DNA of 43,977 bases from Prasinococcaceae sp. CCMP 1430 (GCA_013416795.1 RQSC01000018.1:86029-130005), one strand, 5' to 3'. Counted from the stretch's first letter, positions 14,709-39,928 are shown. Notes: generated by a model not told the origin, from the letters alone. Made by a program: numbers and translations.

Positions 14709-15639
14709 GCGGACGGCGGCGGCGTAAAGGCCGCGAAACATCCGGGACCTGGAAAACTCAGCGCCCAGACCGCGCGCGGCAGCGACGCCGCAGCTTTCCA
14801 ATGGACAAGAGAGTTTAGGTTTGGGAAACTTATGGGGATACAAACGTGCTCACTTTTCATGTCAAAGTGAACGCACGCGGACGTCCTAACCCTTCCATGA
14901 ACCCCAACTTGCCGCGATGCGGCGCGCCTGTCGGGGTGCTCGCCCGTGGGTAAAAATTATATGGATTTAACAGGAGCGTGTTCTTGTGGTGTGCGGCGCG
15001 CCGTGCTGCGCGCGGCGCGCGATCCGCGCGCGCGGGGATCTCCATCGGGGGGCAGGGAGAGGCCCACGCGCGCCGATCGGCTGCGAAAAACGGCGCCGCG
15101 CGGCGGGGGAGGGCCCAGCGGGCGCGGCGCCCGCTTCGTCCGCGCGAGGGCCCGCGGAGCGCACGAGCGAAACGGCGCGCCACCCGCGAGGTAGCGTGGT
15201 CCGGCGCAAGGCGCCGGGGGGGCGTTGCACGGGACGCGCGGGCATGAAAGTCATCCGTTTCCCGTTCCGTTCCGGCGGGCGACGGCCGGCGGCGACGGCG
15301 GCGGTGCTGCTGCAGATGCCGCGGCGGCGGCTCGCAGTGGCGCGCCGCCGCGCGCGTATGGCGTCGTTTGGCGCCATCAGGACGCACCGGCACGTCGCGG
15401 AGCCGCGCGGGGAAACGCACGTTGACCGCGGGACCCGCGCCGCCCCGCGACGGTGTGTGGGTGTGGGTGCGGGTGTGGGTGTGGGGCGGGCCGGTTGGGG
15501 GAGGGGAGGGGGGCTTGGGGGCTTGGGGGGGGGGGGAGGGCGTGTTCCGGATGGCAGGGGTCGCGGCTGACAGGCCAAGCGCTGCTCGGCTCTTGGCGCC
15601 ACTCTGCCGCTGGGTTCCGTCCCTGCGCAGATCGCGGCC

Positions 15640-17574
15640 ATGCCCGCGATGTCGCGCACCGCGCTCATCGGCGCCGTGTGCGCCGCAGGCGTCGCGTGCG
15701 CGTCCGCCGAGTACTACGCGTACAACACCACCGCCCCTACGGACGGCGTCGATGTGTGGGCGCTCCTCGCCTCTTTCGATCCGGCCTGCCCGCGGGACTG
15801 CGCCAACAGCAACCGGGACGCCAGGACTTACGGGGTCCCGCGGTGCGAAGACGACCAGGAGGAGTTCGGCATCGCGTGCCGCACGCACTTTTGCTACGAC
15901 TTGCTTACAGTCGTTGCGGAGATGGACCCCGCCCCCTTCCGTGAGGCCGGCCATGGCGAGTTGATTGATGCTCTCCCCTGGTTCATGAATGCGTGCGATC
16001 CGGAGGGTGCGGGTGAGCTCGGCGAGTGCCCCAAGGGGAAGCAGCTCGACATGATGGCCGACAACGTCTTCGACAGCTGCCAGAAGGACTGCTCGTTCGA
16101 CAAGAAGGAGGCCAAGCAGCTTGGCATCCCGAAGTGCTCCAAGGGGGACGAGGAGTACGGCGACAAGTGCTTCCTCGACCCTGCGTGCGGCTTCGCCTTC
16201 GCCGAGATCCTGCCCCACGTCCATTGCCTGGACCAGGAAGTTTCCGAGGCCGGCGAAGCGGTCTTGAATGCGTGCGGCTTCGGAGACGCCGATTATTATG
16301 AGGACGACGAGGACTACGTGGCAAGCGGCGAGAGCTACTGCGAGGAGTCGGACTTCAACAAGAAGGATTGCAAGTCGCAGCCGATATGCTCGTGGCATGA
16401 CGGCGAGTGCTGGTTCAGCGGCAGCGATGAGCACCACCCCTACGAAGACCACTACCCGCACTACCCGGAGGACGACCACTACCCGCACTACCCGGAGTAC
16501 CCGCAGGACGACCACTACCCGCACTACCCGCAGGACGACCACTACCCTCACTACCCGGAGTACCCGGAGGACGACCACTACCCGCACTACCCGGAGTACC
16601 CGCAGGACGACCACTACCCGCACTACCCGGAGGACGACCACTACCCGCACTACCCGCACTACCCGGAGGACGACCACTACCCGTACAACAACTACACTGG
16701 GTACGACGACCACTACCCGTACGACGACCACTACCCGTACAGCAACTACACTGGGTACGACATCCCCTACCCGTACTACCCGGATGAGGACCACCACGAC
16801 GACCACCACGACGACCACCACGACGCCCCGTGCCCCAAGAACAAGCATATCGAGCCGCTCGTCGACGCCTTCTTTGAGAGCTGCATGCCTGACTGCGCCG
16901 CGAGCAAGAGCGAGGCCAAGGAGCTGGGCATCCCTAAGTGCTCGAAGGGCGAGGAGCAGTACGGCGGCGGGTGCTACCAGGACCCCGATTGCTTCGCCGC
17001 CATCTACGAGATTCTGCCCGTTGCGCACTGCCTTCCCGAGGAATTTGGTGACATCGCCGAGCCCATCGCGATCGCGTGCGGGTTCGTTCCCCCCGAGGAG
17101 GACCATGATGACCACCACGACGACCACGACGACCACTACCCCCACGACGACCACTACCCCCACGACGACCACTACCCGCACTACCCGGAGGACGACCACT
17201 ACCCGTACTACTCCCACTGCGACGGCCTCTCGAAGAAGAAGTGCGGCAAGGAGGATGGCTGCGTCTACGAGAACAAGATGTGCATGGAGGAGCCGCACGA
17301 CGACCACTACCCGCACTACTCCCACTGCGACGGCCTCTCGAAGAAGAAGTGCGGCAAGGAGGATGGCTGCGTCTACAAGAACAAGATGTGCATGGAGGAG
17401 CCGCCGATGCCGGTGAAGGAGTCCAAGAAGGAGTCCAAGAAGGAGTCCAAGAAGGAGTCCAAGAAGGAGTCCAAGAAGAAGGAGTCCAAGAAGAAGTCCA
17501 AGAAGGAGAAGTCCAAGAAGAAGGACAAGTCCAAGAAGAAGGACAAGAAGAAGAAGTCCAAGAAGAAGAACTAA
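15640..17574 (+). CDS. Secreted His/Tyr/Asp/Pro-repeat, Cys-rich protein with poly-Lys tail (644 aa, intronless)
   Basis: Signal-peptide-like TALIGAVCAAGVACASA; strong G/C third-position bias in this frame; internal domain triplication, DDHYPHYPE repeats and KESK repeats. Confidence 0.88.
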   Translation: MPAMSRTALIGAVCAAGVACASAEYYAYNTTAPTDGVDVWALLASFDPACPRDCANSNRDARTYGVPRCEDDQEEFGIACRTHFCYDLLTVVAEMDPAPFREAGHGELIDALPWFMNACDPEGAGELGECPKGKQLDMMADNVFDSCQKDCSFDKKEAKQLGIPKCSKGDEEYGDKCFLDPACGFAFAEILPHVHCLDQEVSEAGEAVLNACGFGDADYYEDDEDYVASGESYCEESDFNKKDCKSQPICSWHDGECWFSGSDEHHPYEDHYPHYPEDDHYPHYPEYPQDDHYPHYPQDDHYPHYPEYPEDDHYPHYPEYPQDDHYPHYPEDDHYPHYPHYPEDDHYPYNNYTGYDDHYPYDDHYPYSNYTGYDIPYPYYPDEDHHDDHHDDHHDAPCPKNKHIEPLVDAFFESCMPDCAASKSEAKELGIPKCSKGEEQYGGGCYQDPDCFAAIYEILPVAHCLPEEFGDIAEPIAIACGFVPPEEDHDDHHDDHDDHYPHDDHYPHDDHYPHYPEDDHYPYYSHCDGLSKKKCGKEDGCVYENKMCMEEPHDDHYPHYSHCDGLSKKKCGKEDGCVYKNKMCMEEPPMPVKESKKESKKESKKESKKESKKKESKKKSKKEKSKKKDKSKKKDKKKKSKKKN

Positions 17575-19910: not shown

Positions 19911-22298
19911 TCACTGGAACGTAGAGTCGTCGTCGCCAGCGTCGGCCGCCCCGCGCGAGCCGTCGCACTTGGGCGCGGGTAGCTCGAAGCACGCGATCTG
20001 CGTGGAGCCACCGCGACTGGCACGCACGCGCGCGAGCGACAGCGTGCCCTCCGAGACGAAGCTCGCGCATTCGCCGCTGTTGTCTTCCCAGTGGCACTCA
20101 GAGCACCAGCCGCGCCACTCGAGCGGCCGGAAAGTGCCGTCGCACATCGCCTCGGGCAGCTGCGAGCCCCTCCCATCGGAATCCACCCCCCGCCCGCCGC
20201 GCAGCGCGTCGAGCAAGCGCTGCGCGTCCTCCATGCGTAGCGACAGCGAGGCGGCCGCCGCACAGCTGCCGCCTCCGCCTCCCCCGTCCGCACACCCGGC
20301 GTCAAAGAAGTCCACCGACTCGCGCGCGACGCCCTCGGCGACCTCCGGCGCGTACACGACGTCGATGCCGAACTCGGTCTTCGCCCGCTCAATGAGGGCG
20401 ACGTTGTTGAAGAGCTGGTCCGGCGGACACGACATCGGCAGGAAGTTGTCCTTCTCGGACCCCGGCACCATGCAGCCGGTGGAGAAGATGTTGTCGTGGC
20501 CAGCGTTGGACCTGTCACACGCGCACCAGAAATGCCGCGGCAGCACGAGCGTTCCGAGGCCAGCCGAGTGCGCGGCGGCGAGGCCCGCGAGCACGCCAAG
20601 ACGCTGCTCGTCGACCAGCCGCAAGTGCGCCTTCAGGCGCGCGTCGGCCGCGGGTGTCGCCTTCCGCAGGTGCTCCGGAAAGTTTCCAGGGAACTTGGCA
20701 TCCCACGCCTCGCGCGCGCCCGCCTTGGCCAGTTCAGCCTCCGAGCCGGCATCGACCGGCATGGGCAGCGACCGCAGCAGGAGCACCCTGCCGTTGCCCG
20801 TGCGGCAATCCCCGCCGCTCGCCCGGCCGACCCCCGTCCCCACGCTCAGCCTCCCACCCTCCATTTCTTCCCCGCGCCAGACGCCCATGTGCCTCATGCG
20901 GTGCGTCTTGCCGGCCATTGTGTTTCCGAGCGCGCCGAAGACGTGCGTGAAGTGGGCGGCGAGCGGCACGCGGCCGACCGCCTGCATGCTGTGCTTGATT
21001 GCCCATGCGTGGCCGTTGGCGACCAGAGGCGGCGGCAGGATGCCCATGTCCACGTCGAGCGCGCCCACGGAGTTGCGCTCGCCAAGCGCGCACAGCCGCG
21101 AGGGGGCGCCCGCGCGAGCCAGGTCCGGCGCGCTCTGTCCGCTCCGCCACGCGGCGCGCGCACGAGCAGCATCGCCGAAGGACTCCGCGTAGCACTCCGC
21201 CGCGAGTGCACCTCGAGCAGCCAAGTGGTTGTAGACCTGCTGATCGGTCTTGAGGTCCTTCACACGCACGCCGTTCACCTCCTCGAGGTCGCCGCGCATG
21301 GCTGAGAGCATCCTTTCGCCGAGCGACAGCGCACGAGGCGTGTTGCGCCAGACGACCACGCCCGTGTTAAGCTGCCCGTGCCGCGAGTATGACGACCCCT
21401 CCGCGGCCTCCACGAGCACGCTCAGGTTGTCGCTCGACACGGAGACGTCCGCCGCGGCAATGTCGGCGCACGCCGCGCCCTCGTCGAATGCGAACGACCC
21501 CGCTGCGCTGCCGGCGTCGGTGGGATCGATCCGCCGCTCGACCGCAGCGCCGTCCGGCGCGGCCTCGCCCCGCAGCAGGCACGGCGTCGGGTCGCGCAGC
21601 CAGAGTGCGTCGGCGTCGCTGACCACCGCGACGTCAACCAGTCCATTCTGGAGGGCGAGGAGCGCGTAGCGGAATTTGATGACACCGAGCTGCTTCCAGC
21701 CGCCCGTCGAGTGGCCCGTGCCCTTGAGGTCCGCGCTGTCGGTGAGCTCCGGGGTGGGGAATGCTGGCACGCCTCGCGCTCGCAAGGCGCGCAGCGTGGT
21801 CTCATCGAGCGCCCCTACCGCGTGTGGCACGCCGGCGGCCTCGGCGTGCCAGAGCCACGTGCGCCCCAACGGCAGCGCCTTGGCGTCGAAGAAGGTCAGC
21901 ACAACCGCGCGCGAGCCGTGCGAGCCATGGCGCACGGCCTCGCCGAACGCATCCTCGGCGCTCTTTCCGTCGTGCACCGACTCGGGCATGCGCTCCGCGG
22001 CGGCGGTGCGCTCCTGCTGCTGCTGGTGGTGGTGGTGGTGGTCATTTGCATCAGCTGCCCCGATCGTGGCTTTGCGCGCTCCACTGTCAAGCGCGGAAGC
22101 CAGCCTCGCTGCCATCGCCTCGCTGACGCTGTCTCCGCCCTGGACGCTCGCGCCTTCGCCGCGCACTGTCCAGCGGGCGCGTCTGCCCCCCGACACGCCG
22201 GCAAAAACGCGCAGCCGCGGACCGGCGACCACCGCCAGCGCGAGCACGGACGCGGCGAACGTCACCATGAGCAGCGCGGCCGCGTTCGGCCGCCGCAT
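19911..22298 (-). CDS. XEG113: GT77 nucleotide-diphospho-sugar transferase, XEG113-like arabinosyltransferase (type II membrane)
   Basis: N-terminal signal anchor; VGALDE, SDADALWLRDP (DxD), LNTGVVVWR, DQQVYN, VANGH, HFTH...K.HRMR..G.W and the XEG113-type C-terminal LVLPR.WCACDR...GC..PGS...LPM.CP.D. Confidence 0.78.
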   Translation of the reverse strand: MRRPNAAALLMVTFAASVLALAVVAGPRLRVFAGVSGGRRARWTVRGEGASVQGGDSVSEAMAARLASALDSGARKATIGAADANDHHHHHQQQQERTAAAERMPESVHDGKSAEDAFGEAVRHGSHGSRAVVLTFFDAKALPLGRTWLWHAEAAGVPHAVGALDETTLRALRARGVPAFPTPELTDSADLKGTGHSTGGWKQLGVIKFRYALLALQNGLVDVAVVSDADALWLRDPTPCLLRGEAAPDGAAVERRIDPTDAGSAAGSFAFDEGAACADIAAADVSVSSDNLSVLVEAAEGSSYSRHGQLNTGVVVWRNTPRALSLGERMLSAMRGDLEEVNGVRVKDLKTDQQVYNHLAARGALAAECYAESFGDAARARAAWRSGQSAPDLARAGAPSRLCALGERNSVGALDVDMGILPPPLVANGHAWAIKHSMQAVGRVPLAAHFTHVFGALGNTMAGKTHRMRHMGVWRGEEMEGGRLSVGTGVGRASGGDCRTGNGRVLLLRSLPMPVDAGSEAELAKAGAREAWDAKFPGNFPEHLRKATPAADARLKAHLRLVDEQRLGVLAGLAAAHSAGLGTLVLPRHFWCACDRSNAGHDNIFSTGCMVPGSEKDNFLPMSCPPDQLFNNVALIERAKTEFGIDVVYAPEVAEGVARESVDFFDAGCADGGGGGGSCAAAASLSLRMEDAQRLLDALRGGRGVDSDGRGSQLPEAMCDGTFRPLEWRGWCSECHWEDNSGECASFVSEGTLSLARVRASRGGSTQIACFELPAPKCDGSRGAADAGDDDSTFQ

Positions 22299-23207
22299 GG
22301 CCGCGTGGCCGCCGCTCGCCTCGCCCCTCCCCAACACGATCGTCGTCCCCGCCCACCCAACCCCCCTCGCAGCCACCGCAGCCACCGCAGTGCCTCGTTG
22401 CGCGCCCGCCGCGCGGCCTGCATGATTTGACGCGCGTCCGCGTCCCCCTTCCCCCCTCCCCCCCTTCCCGCCCCGGTCGCCCTCCAGCCCGTGCCGCTCC
22501 TCCCACCACCACCACCACCAGACACACACACACACACACACTCGCGCCACCCCCCGCCGCTTCCCCGTCCCCGGGGAACGCGTCGCTGCGCGCGTCCTGC
22601 TACAGAACCGCACAAAGGGTTGGCCCCAAACCAAGATCTGGAAGAGCGCTACTTTGGGTTAATTCGAGGGTTTGTGTCCGGCTGCCCTTTTTCACACTGG
22701 GAATGCTCGCGACCCGGGTTCGCACGATTTGACCCGCTCTTGGGGTTCTCAAGACCGGGCGTTTCCATCGGTCCGACCGGCATCATCCCGGTGTATGACC
22801 CGGGTCGAGGGTGTCAGACCGAGCGGCTTCGTACATCTGAACCCTCCATTCAACTTTCGTATCACATGTAATTCATAAATGACCTTACCTCAAACACAAC
22901 CCAAAATCGTCCCCCCTCTGCTCGGCTCGCCCCGGGCTCGGGTCAGATCTCCGCTCTGCGGGTTGCGCGCGGATCGCGACGCAATCGGGCGCCCCGGGGC
23001 GCTTTCGCGGCGAGCGCGCGCGCTCGTCCGCGGGTCGGGGTGGCGAAACGAGTCCGCGGAACGACGGTTCCGTCCGCGAAATGGGCGGAGGATGTGGCCG
23101 TCGAAGGAGATGTCACCAGGCCCCTGCAGGACTGGCTCACGCGCGCGCCGCCCACCGCCCAAGCCCCCGACACACACACCGCCCGCGCGCGCGCGCACGC
23201 ACTCTTC

Positions 23208-24332: not shown

Positions 24333-26003
24333 CTAGAAGAGCGTTGAGGTGGGGCCCAGCAGCGCGCGCAGCCCTGCGTGAGCAACTGCCGCGGCGCCTG
24401 CCACGACGGTGCCCCATCTGCACGCCGCAACGAGAGTGAGGCCGACGCGCCAGGCGCCCACCTTTTGCGCATAGACGGCAGCGGGGTCAATGGGCGCGCG
24501 CGGGACGGCGGGTCGCACGTGACGGGAACCAACAAGGCCACCCCCGCGAAGAGAATCCGCTGCACCAGCGCGCTGGTCGGCGTCGCCTGCCGGCGCGCGG
24601 CGCTCGGCCTCGCTCAGGCTGCGCCCGTCTCCATCAGTTCGGCGCTTCTTCGATGTGATGGTGCGCGGCTCGCTGGCGCCGTGCTCGGCCAGCAGCGACG
24701 CGTCCTCTCCCAGCAGCGGCACGCCTCCGCTCGCGTCATTGGCGCACGCTGAGGAGCCACAATTTGCCGCCAGACTTGGCGAAACCAGGAACGCTCTGGG
24801 CAAGCAGGGTGGGTTGTCCATGGTCGTCGCGGGGAATCGGCGCTTGAATGCAAAGTAGAGCACGACGCCAGCGGTGCATGCAGAGTACCCTAGCACACCC
24901 TGTGAAGAGAGAGGAGCACGGAAGGCGAACACAGATATGAGCACTGTCACGCTCGATTTGAGCACGCCGAGGATCTGCAGCGTGAGCGGTGATGTGTAAA
25001 AGTTCACCAGATTGTTCGAGAAGTTCACTGCGTAGGCCAAGCAGCCGTTCAGGGCGAAGAGGATCAGGAAGGAGCCATGCGAGGCCGCCGCCTTCGCAGC
25101 CAGCGACGCGGAAAATCCTGGCTCCAGCACGAGCGCCACGGGCAGCAACAGCGCGACGCACACTGGAGCGGCGTGCGCGAGAAGGCTCGCCGGGTCTAGC
25201 CGCTCCTCCGATTTGGCCATCAGCATTGCCGCCATCACACCCTTGAGCGCGCGCAGCAGCACTGCCACTGACGCTGCGATGAACCCAGTCACATTGAAGC
25301 TGCTCTCGAAGCTCGACGCCGCCACCACGCCCATCGCGATGGGCAAGAGCGCAGCGTACGTCCACACGCTTTCGACACGGCCCTGCAGACAAAACGCCAC
25401 CGCGGCGGTCACGGCAGGCGTGGCAGAGGCCACCACCTCAAGGTAACTGAGGGCAAGAGTCTCGAACGCGAGGTTGTTCGCAGCGATGGAGGCGGCAATG
25501 AGCGCCGCAAGCAGCACCACCTTCCACGCGTGAGCTTCGCTCGCGAGCGGCATGCGGCGGTATCCTGCTGCCGCGCATTGGCGTTGCGCGGAGTGTGCCA
25601 TGATGGCACGCCTTTTGCCGCCTTCTTCGACGTCGGGGGGCGATGTCTTCGCGCGCGCGCTGTCACCATCATCATGCCCGCCGCGGTGGCTCGCCGAGAT
25701 GGACGCCGCTATTGACAGCGCCGCGCCAAACACGTCGAAGACCACCACTGACGCCCAGCTGCACATCAGGAAGTGGAAGGCGCTCACGGAGAGCGGGTAA
25801 CGCAGCCCGGGGAGGATGAGCTTGTTCGTGGTGAGCAGCGCCAGCAGCGAGACGGTCCACAGTGCGCAAGCCCCAAGCTTCCGCGCGGCATCGAATGCCC
25901 AGCCCGCCGTCGTCTCGGGGTCCGCAGCAGCGGTCGGCAGCTGAGGAGTAGCAGACAGTAGGCGCTGTTGCGGCGGCGGGCGCGGCCGCGGAGATTCACC
26001 CAT
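24333..26003 (-). CDS. Triose-phosphate-translocator-family nucleotide-sugar transporter (TPT/UXT-like)
   Basis: NKLIL...YPLSVSAFHF, NLAF..L.LSY.EVVASATP, F.VTGF, RALKGV, LAYAVNFSNNLVNFYTSPLTLQILGVLK; about 10 TM segments. Confidence 0.85.
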   Translation of the reverse strand: MGESPRPRPPPQQRLLSATPQLPTAAADPETTAGWAFDAARKLGACALWTVSLLALLTTNKLILPGLRYPLSVSAFHFLMCSWASVVVFDVFGAALSIAASISASHRGGHDDGDSARAKTSPPDVEEGGKRRAIMAHSAQRQCAAAGYRRMPLASEAHAWKVVLLAALIAASIAANNLAFETLALSYLEVVASATPAVTAAVAFCLQGRVESVWTYAALLPIAMGVVAASSFESSFNVTGFIAASVAVLLRALKGVMAAMLMAKSEERLDPASLLAHAAPVCVALLLPVALVLEPGFSASLAAKAAASHGSFLILFALNGCLAYAVNFSNNLVNFYTSPLTLQILGVLKSSVTVLISVFAFRAPLSSQGVLGYSACTAGVVLYFAFKRRFPATTMDNPPCLPRAFLVSPSLAANCGSSACANDASGGVPLLGEDASLLAEHGASEPRTITSKKRRTDGDGRSLSEAERRAPAGDADQRAGAADSLRGGGLVGSRHVRPAVPRAPIDPAAVYAQKVGAWRVGLTLVAACRWGTVVAGAAAVAHAGLRALLGPTSTLF

Positions 26004-26473
26004 TGCTGCACGGTGGGGTGGCGGGTGGGTGAGTGGGTGGGTGGCGGTGGCGCAAGGGGCGCTCCCGCCGTGTGCACCCGTGCAGGGTACGTGATGGCCG
26101 GCGATGTCGCGCTCGCGCGGCCCGACCGAGCGCGAAAAGAAACACGCGAACAGGACGTGCGCGCGCAGGGACGGCGCGCCTTGCGCTTCGAGAGGGGGCG
26201 GGGGAGGACGCACGAGAGGAGGGCCGCGGCCCGCCTAGAGCCGAGGGGGGCGGGGCGGAGTGCGAAAGGTGCCTTGGGCGTGGGGGCGCACGTGGAAGGG
26301 GGCGAGGGGTGTGTCACGGGAAGGGCAAGGGAGGCGAGCGCGCGCGGTGTGACGCCGGCCGCGCGGCGCGGCATCGCGCCCGCCCGCATGCGAAAAGGCC
26401 CAACCGAAAACGAACGAATGTGTACAGTAGTACTGTACTGTACTACCAAAAAAAAGAGCGGAGGTGGCGCTCA

Positions 26474-39168: not shown

Positions 39169-39902
<734 letters not shown>

Positions 39903-39928
39903 NGGGGCGAGCCGGCCGCGCCGCCGCG

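Follow-up and report, generated by a model that had tools for sequence, protein, structure and literature searches.

What could a single protein of a marine green alga be doing with three cysteine-rich domains, two blocks of histidine- and tyrosine-rich repeats and a lysine-rich tail? This question is raised by an open reading frame (ORF) in a 43,977-nucleotide stretch of DNA from Prasinococcaceae sp. CCMP 1430 (GCA_013416795.1, RQSC01000018.1:86029-130005), the whole of which we refer to as the window. The ORF is a real gene, and its three Cys domains belong to an unnamed family that it shares with unrelated marine protists. We propose, with a probability of roughly one half, that its product is a secreted, non-catalytic, modular scaffold of the cell surface or wall, which its tail would tether to anionic wall material or to the acidic bodies of neighbouring molecules. 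A secreted wall or surface scaffold had already been suggested in an initial annotation made from the sequence alone; that part of the suggestion stays the best reading, while the silica-templating slant then given to it is unsupported.

The gene is an intron-less nuclear gene of a marine green picoalga with a genome of about 70% guanine plus cytosine (GC). The GC content of the window is in line with the 69.8% published for Prasinoderma coloniale (PMC7455551), and the protein probably comes from this species. Codon bias is specific to the 644-residue frame, with GC at third codon positions (GC3) of 0.911 compared to 0.356 at second positions (GC2), all 61 lysine codons being AAG and all 36 cysteine codons TGC; the adjacent amino-acid transporter gene has like codon usage and a comparable GC3 of 0.869. 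Long spurious ORFs do arise in high-GC DNA, the opposite strand of the gene region holds an ORF of 822 residues, and the exact protein is missing from the public collection, all of which could mean that the frame arose by chance in GC- and repeat-rich DNA or that the gene is dead. However, the frame-specific codon bias, the even number of cysteines in every module, the homologues in distant taxa and a near-identical fragment from a Tara ocean sample already contradict this possibility, which we regard as close to negligible. Long ORFs also occur in the remaining frames and on the opposite strand, where the repeats are read as strings of Val/Arg or Thr/Arg; we attribute these ORFs to the high GC content.

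The translation resolves into discrete modules (Table 1). At the N-terminus, a single basic residue is followed by a hydrophobic core of 17 residues and by A-S-A ahead of Glu24. We read this as a signal peptide, as the initial annotation had proposed, and the core is the sole hydrophobic segment of the protein, which would accordingly be secreted. The mature protein has 34 cysteines, all inside modules (6+8+4+8+4+4, every count even), and cysteine is absent from the repeats and the tail. Three Cys domains of about 85 residues had been recognized at the outset; the three copies stand, while the cysteine tally needs correction, in that D2 and D3 have eight each, including those of an upstream CPK motif, and D1 has six. 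D2 and D3 are 52% identical (E 1e-31), and D1, which lies in tandem with D2 at a spacing of 97 residues, aligns to both over its first half only (34-36% identity, 35-38 bits). The 4-Cys module that had been described as duplicated is present three times, the last two copies forming a 108-nucleotide tandem duplication (98% matched) and the third being a diverged copy at residues 234-257, upstream of the repeats. Residues 264-383 consist of the expected His/Tyr repeats, with 24 HYP and 14 DDHYP motifs and DNA periods of 36, 63 and 99 nucleotides, the 99-nucleotide period being 95% matched (Tandem Repeats Finder), and a second such block, overlooked before, lies at residues 485-526, so that Asp/His/Tyr/Pro repeats total about 130 + 45 residues. 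The DDHH tracts were found where they had been expected, at residues 384-395 and 487-498. The same is true of the tail of about 50 residues, in which 32 of 52 residues (61%) are Lys, no other Lys-rich segment being found in any of the window's six frames, and of the charge contrast between an acidic body (net -98) and a basic tail (net +23). A Pfam search of the whole protein matched no family, including LNR (PF00066), and a sequence search of solved structures with the whole protein returned noise only.

Table 1. Modules of the protein with their window coordinates, and relatives of its Cys domain
Feature or relative	Position in window	Strand	Remarks
ORF	15640-17574	+	single ATG-started frame of 644 residues, one open frame
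Signal-peptide-like N-terminus, residues 1-23	15640..15708	+	read from the translation; predicted cleavage after A-S-A
Cys domain copy D1, residues 37-121	15748..16002	+	6-Cys form without C1 and C7
Cys domain copy D2, residues 126-214	16015..16281	+	8-Cys form; AlphaFold2 model, five helices
4-Cys module, first diverged copy, residues 230-260	16327..16419	+	alignment with the other copies
Asp/His/Tyr/Pro tandem repeats (DDHYPHYPE type) and closing DDHH tract, residues 264-395	16429..16824	+	Tandem Repeats Finder
Cys domain copy D3, residues 394-482	16819..17085	+	8-Cys form; 52% identity to D2
Second DDHH / DDHYPH block, residues 485-526	17092..17217	+	
Two near-identical 4-Cys modules, residues 527-548 and 563-584, with short His/Tyr spacer	17218..17391	+	108-nucleotide tandem duplication
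Polybasic Lys/Ser/Glu tail, residues 593-644, net +23, and stop codon	17416..17574	+	composition
P0001			Tara Oceans fragment, run ERR1719298, MERC catalogue
P0002			diplonemid Artemidia motanka, at least 10 copies; transmembrane helix
P0003			JGI metagenome protein, 734 residues, 3 copies; esterase-like N-terminal domain
P0004			dinoflagellate MGD, 4 copies; hydrophobic end like that of glycosylphosphatidylinositol (GPI)-anchored proteins
P0005			choanoflagellate Didymoeca costata, 6 copies; signal peptide and transmembrane helix
P0006			choanoflagellate Didymoeca costata, 5 copies; transmembrane helix
P0007			dinoflagellate Polykrikos kofoidii, 3 copies
P0009/P0012			MMETSP transcript, 2-3 copies; P0012 opens with a signal peptide

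A profile of the three window copies, searched against 1.84 billion representative proteins, returned nine matches, eight of which are true relatives; the ninth (P0008) was discarded, its match being confined to one short motif of a Cys-poor repeat. Because this one full-database search used a profile of only three sequences, the family probably exceeds the eight clusters found. Iterated local searches gathered 37 distinct domain copies, which follow the pattern C1, helix, C2-P-x-D-C3, [LI]-P-x-C4, G-x2-E-[WYF]-G-x2-C5, x4-5-C6, helices with an optional C7, and C8, and which are spaced about 100 residues apart in arrays; in a looser form the CPxDC motif reads C-P-x-[DE]-C, and two helices precede the last Cys. 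When a profile was built from the copies of other organisms only, it recovered D1, D2 and D3 with 49, 38 and 35 bits, compared to 6.7 bits for the best of 200 shuffles, and P0003 alone found the window by tblastn (E 2e-11). The domain is thus not unique to this protein or its lineage. The initial annotation had called it unrecognized, and so it is: neither Pfam nor solved structures, compared by sequence or by fold, gave a match, and a Pfam run on seven of the relatives yielded nothing relevant. Word-indexed homologue searches with region 40-260 and with a long-protein alignment gave nothing new, the same kind of search with a short-protein alignment gave one further protein (P0013, discussed below), the ESM Atlas held no usable match, and scans of bacterial and archaeal genomes, metagenome contigs and viral contigs found no relative.

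Two cysteine forms of the domain exist, one with eight cysteines and one with six that misses C1 and C7 together (D1, P0003, P0009/P0012). The joint loss of these two residues suggests that they pair in a C1-C7 disulfide, which in D2 would link residues 130 and 196. A tree of the 37 copies was too poorly resolved to distinguish vertical descent from transfer; D2 and D3 formed a recent pair.

Structure prediction of the repeated domain, which had been recommended with the initial annotation, gave a confident model. AlphaFold2 with an 11-row alignment of D2 reached a mean predicted local distance difference test score (pLDDT) of 83.9 and a predicted template modelling score (pTM) of 0.63, compared to a pLDDT of 40 for a single-sequence run on residues 30-260, and it depicts the domain as a unit of five helices. 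Foldseek with this model found nothing in PDB or BFVD at E <= 0.001, and a wide, exhaustive VIA-align comparison with 48,161 chains had a best Z of 4.9, below what the program's documentation treats as meaningful for helical proteins; the generic helical bundles that it returned were rejected as a fold assignment. The only match of the domain profile among PDB sequences was ovomucoid, which at E 0.25 was not significant. The P-x-C-x6-Y-x3-C spacing of such Kazal domains does coincide with the core motif of the family, but the D2 model is all-helical and Kazal was not among the fold search matches, and this identity was rejected as well. We therefore treat the predicted unit as a domain with no recognized structural relative, bearing in mind that poor or absent matches are no proof of a new fold.

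Every relative whose ends are complete resembles a surface protein. A single transmembrane helix follows the arrays in P0002, P0005 and P0006, and P0003 combines an N-terminal esterase-like alpha/beta hydrolase (E 5e-5 to PDB 3h2g) with its domain copies and a KKSKK-type tail, so that it appears to be an enzyme bearing the same presumed anchoring cassette. As a separate observation on P0003, the stretch between its esterase-like domain and its arrays reads as ShK-toxin-like by its cysteine pattern. Within one family, the domain array is held by a transmembrane helix, a GPI-like end or a polybasic tail, and it is also joined to an enzyme. This alternation of anchors, together with the attachment to an enzyme, speaks for a domain that binds or acts as a spacer without catalytic activity, and for a Lys tail that serves as an anchor. 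The protist relatives share with the window protein the core motif, the tandem copies and the extracellular setting. In contrast to them, the window protein has only three copies, interspersed with His/Tyr repeats and 4-Cys modules; it is soluble, with a polybasic end where the relatives have a membrane anchor.

The same relatives could be taken to indicate adhesion or recognition, with the Cys domains recognizing a specific partner, for instance a glycan, an adjoining cell of a loose colony or a microbe, and with the repeats serving as a stalk. Those with membrane helices have a type I membrane topology, long tandem arrays and a short cytoplasmic tail, as adhesion receptors do, and two residues are conserved in the family core, one acidic (the D of CPxDC) and one aromatic (in E-[WYF]-G). 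No ligand is known, however, and the fold searches gave no likeness to a lectin or adhesion fold; we consider such a role distinctly unlikely.

Two sequences with close matches to the window protein bear on how it evolves. P0001 differs from residues 138-269 at five positions and by a four-residue insertion, and its His/Tyr array is much shorter. It comes from the MERC catalogue, which we take to be a protein-level assembly of Tara metatranscriptomes, and it suggests that a very close relative is expressed in the ocean. In P0013, an ENA assembly protein of 164 residues, three repeats of the Notch LNR type (E 3e-18) flank a copy of the first 4-Cys module (79% identity) together with the beginning of the His/Tyr repeats. 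LNR repeats are found in P0013 only and are absent from the window protein, with which it shares the cassette of 4-Cys module and His/Tyr repeats. The presence of this cassette in P0013 indicates that it has been shuffled among proteins of the lineage, and points to an exchange of modules among secreted proteins of Prasinoderma-like algae.

We propose that these parts work together in the following way. The signal peptide would direct the protein into the secretory pathway, and its remaining 34 cysteines would form disulfides within the modules. The three large modules, as disulfide-stapled units of five helices, would act as rigid binding or spacer units, like the tandem arrays on the surface proteins of other protists, and the Asp/His/Tyr/Pro repeats would provide a fast-evolving, extended and strongly acidic spacer that could chelate divalent metals through His and Asp and might be cross-linked through Tyr. 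The C-terminal cassette of 4-Cys modules and poly-Lys would replace the membrane helix or GPI-like end of the relatives, and the tail would bind electrostatically to anionic wall material or to the acidic bodies of neighbours, producing a salt-bridged network. Metal chelation and Tyr cross-linking are plausible additions to this scaffold.

What has been published on Prasinoderma is consistent with a place for such a protein. Its cells are enclosed by a thick wall of several layers and have no gelatinous envelope (PMC4860620), and its genome paper, which found no genes for making cellulose, mannan, xyloglucan or xylan, calls for wall biochemistry (PMC7455551). Since none of the usual polysaccharide synthases was found, a secreted, disulfide-rich and self-complementary protein is a tangible candidate for a search of isolated walls. 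It is conceivable, though doubtful, that the implications go further: the Cys domain would be an undescribed extracellular domain with an unseen fold, ancient or horizontally spread among green algae, diplonemids, dinoflagellates and choanoflagellates, and the protein would be a main building block of an apparently non-polysaccharide wall, self-assembling on secretion into seawater of pH 8 through His/Asp-metal bonds and through salt bridges between poly-Lys and acidic segments.

Several points weigh against the proposed scaffold. No anionic wall polymer has been documented for Prasinoderma, to which the tail could be bound; secretion rests on our reading of the N-terminus; and none of the relatives has been named, assigned to a Pfam family or studied for its function. 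Neither the exact protein nor any full-length near-identical protein is in a collection of 15 billion sequences, and the gene may be unannotated or modelled otherwise in public records. Finally, the short array of P0001 is possibly an artefact of protein-level assembly. The initial annotation had named three findings that would overturn its reading, namely a match of the domain to a known family with an unrelated role, a protein that is not secreted, and a gene that is not expressed; none of the three was obtained.

The repeats have prompted us to consider a different primary function. In a surface buffer or capture device for trace metals, the 49 His residues, which lie between Asp and Tyr, would gather Zn, Cu, Ni, Co or Fe on the surface of an alga of deep, nutrient-poor water, and the Cys domains and the tail would only position them. 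His makes up 8% of the mature protein and occurs in regular DDHYPHYPE and DDHH units, and the diplonemid P0002 likewise has His/Tyr/Pro/Ser-rich tandem linkers between two blocks of Cys domains (residues 815-985, with SYPTAH and HFPAAH units), which echo the His/Tyr/Pro repeats of the window protein. The isolate was taken at a depth of 150 m (PMC7455551). However, neither a known metal-uptake domain nor a partner transporter turned up, and repeat number seems to shift from one close relative to another, as suits a spacer more than a tuned site for binding. We judge metal buffering to be rather unlikely, noting that a structural protein may bind metals as well. A second use of the same composition, as a precursor of cationic or His-rich antimicrobial peptides that are freed by proteolysis, is hardly credible; what is generally known of histatin-like and polylysine-like peptides does recall the composition seen here, but the units are not separated by a dibasic processing pattern, and the His-rich part is strongly acidic rather than cationic.

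For the scaffold that we favour, two groups of structural proteins offer a comparison. Mussel byssus and foot proteins, as they are generally known, also consist of secreted tandem repeats in which His occurs together with Tyr and Pro, and by analogy the window protein might assemble through His-metal bonds on leaving an acidic secretory compartment for seawater at pH 8. The lineages are unrelated, and dihydroxyphenylalanine (DOPA) or metal cross-links are not evidenced for the window protein; the likeness is an analogy only. Extensins and other hydroxyproline-rich glycoproteins (HRGPs), to which the initial annotation had appealed, are likewise secreted, repetitive and rich in Pro and Tyr, whereas the window repeats are strongly acidic and His-rich. 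The translation contains no Ser-Pro dipeptide, and therefore no Ser-Pro(3-5) or (Ser-Pro)n glycomodule, and it has six Y-x-Y motifs (five of them YPY), which could cross-link, and four YY pairs. Because the defining Ser-Pro motifs are absent, the extensin analogy fails, and the case for extensin-type chemistry is weak.

The tail raises the possibility of a mineral template similar to silaffins or cingulins, a reading that the initial annotation proposed for it, in which the Lys/Ser tail nucleates silica and the acidic body exerts control. Lys clusters target diatom proteins to the wall, and silaffins and cingulins are marked by pentalysine clusters, with 5 Lys in 12-14 residues, or by KXXK regions (PMC9650480). 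The tail formally reaches this cluster density in the majority of its 14-residue windows; it has 17 KxxK motifs, and the protein has 48 windows of 14 residues that hold at least 5 Lys, all but one of them in the C-terminal modules and the tail. Didymoeca, a host of domain relatives, builds a silica lorica. Besides the Lys clusters, diatom silaffins and cingulins share with the window protein a signal peptide and, as in Y-type cingulins, Tyr-rich regions (PMC9650480). The differences are more extensive. The Lys tract of the window protein is one terminal block spaced by Glu and Ser, rather than Ser/Gly-spaced KXXK throughout; the protein has folded Cys domains; the RXL motif for proteolytic processing is absent from its whole length; and no sequence homology to silaffins or cingulins was expected or found. 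The literature consulted on Prasinoderma describes a thick multilayered organic wall and no mineralisation (PMC4860620), and the host is not known to make silica. A comparable poly-Lys tail is present on the esterase-like P0003. The domain, moreover, occurs mostly in groups that are not known to silicify, among them diplonemids and dinoflagellates. We consider a mineral template very improbable, and the silaffin-like and biomineral interpretation is unsupported; as far as we are aware, any polycation precipitates silica in vitro, so that such an assay would not discriminate. Diatom frustulins carry an acidic Cys-rich domain (ACR). Among the matches of the 1.84-billion-protein scan that have a recorded source, none is from a diatom, and two matches have no organism on record.

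Some features of the surrounding DNA deserve mention. A GT-rich and G-rich microsatellite with GTGTGG and GGGGAGGG units occupies 15455-15530, 110-185 nucleotides upstream of the start codon, and likely sits in the promoter or 5' untranslated region. Two ORFs on the minus strand, 2.5-9 kb from the gene, encode a nucleotide-diphospho-sugar transferase domain (19914-22634, PF03407, E 1e-12) and a TPT-family transporter (24336-26213, PF03151, E 2.5e-29). PF03407 presumably includes the GT77 glycosyltransferases that arabinosylate extensins, and we assume that PF03151 includes sugar-nucleotide transporters; the closeness of both ORFs to the gene may be due to chance. At 39171-39903, just upstream of an ORF start, an unbroken run of about 730 C closed by a single N is probably an artefact of assembly or gap filling and not biology. 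ARAGORN detected no tRNA gene in the window.

The Cys module described here has no Pfam entry and no recognized structural relative, and it is found on surface proteins across four eukaryotic supergroups; it deserves a name, a structure and a search for its ligand. Polybasic tails seem to be interchangeable with transmembrane and GPI-type anchors within this one family, which provides a testable rule for how secreted proteins might be retained by wall-bearing picoalgae. Prasinoderma belongs to the earliest-diverging phylum of green plants, and the window protein is a concrete candidate to be sought in preparations of its wall.

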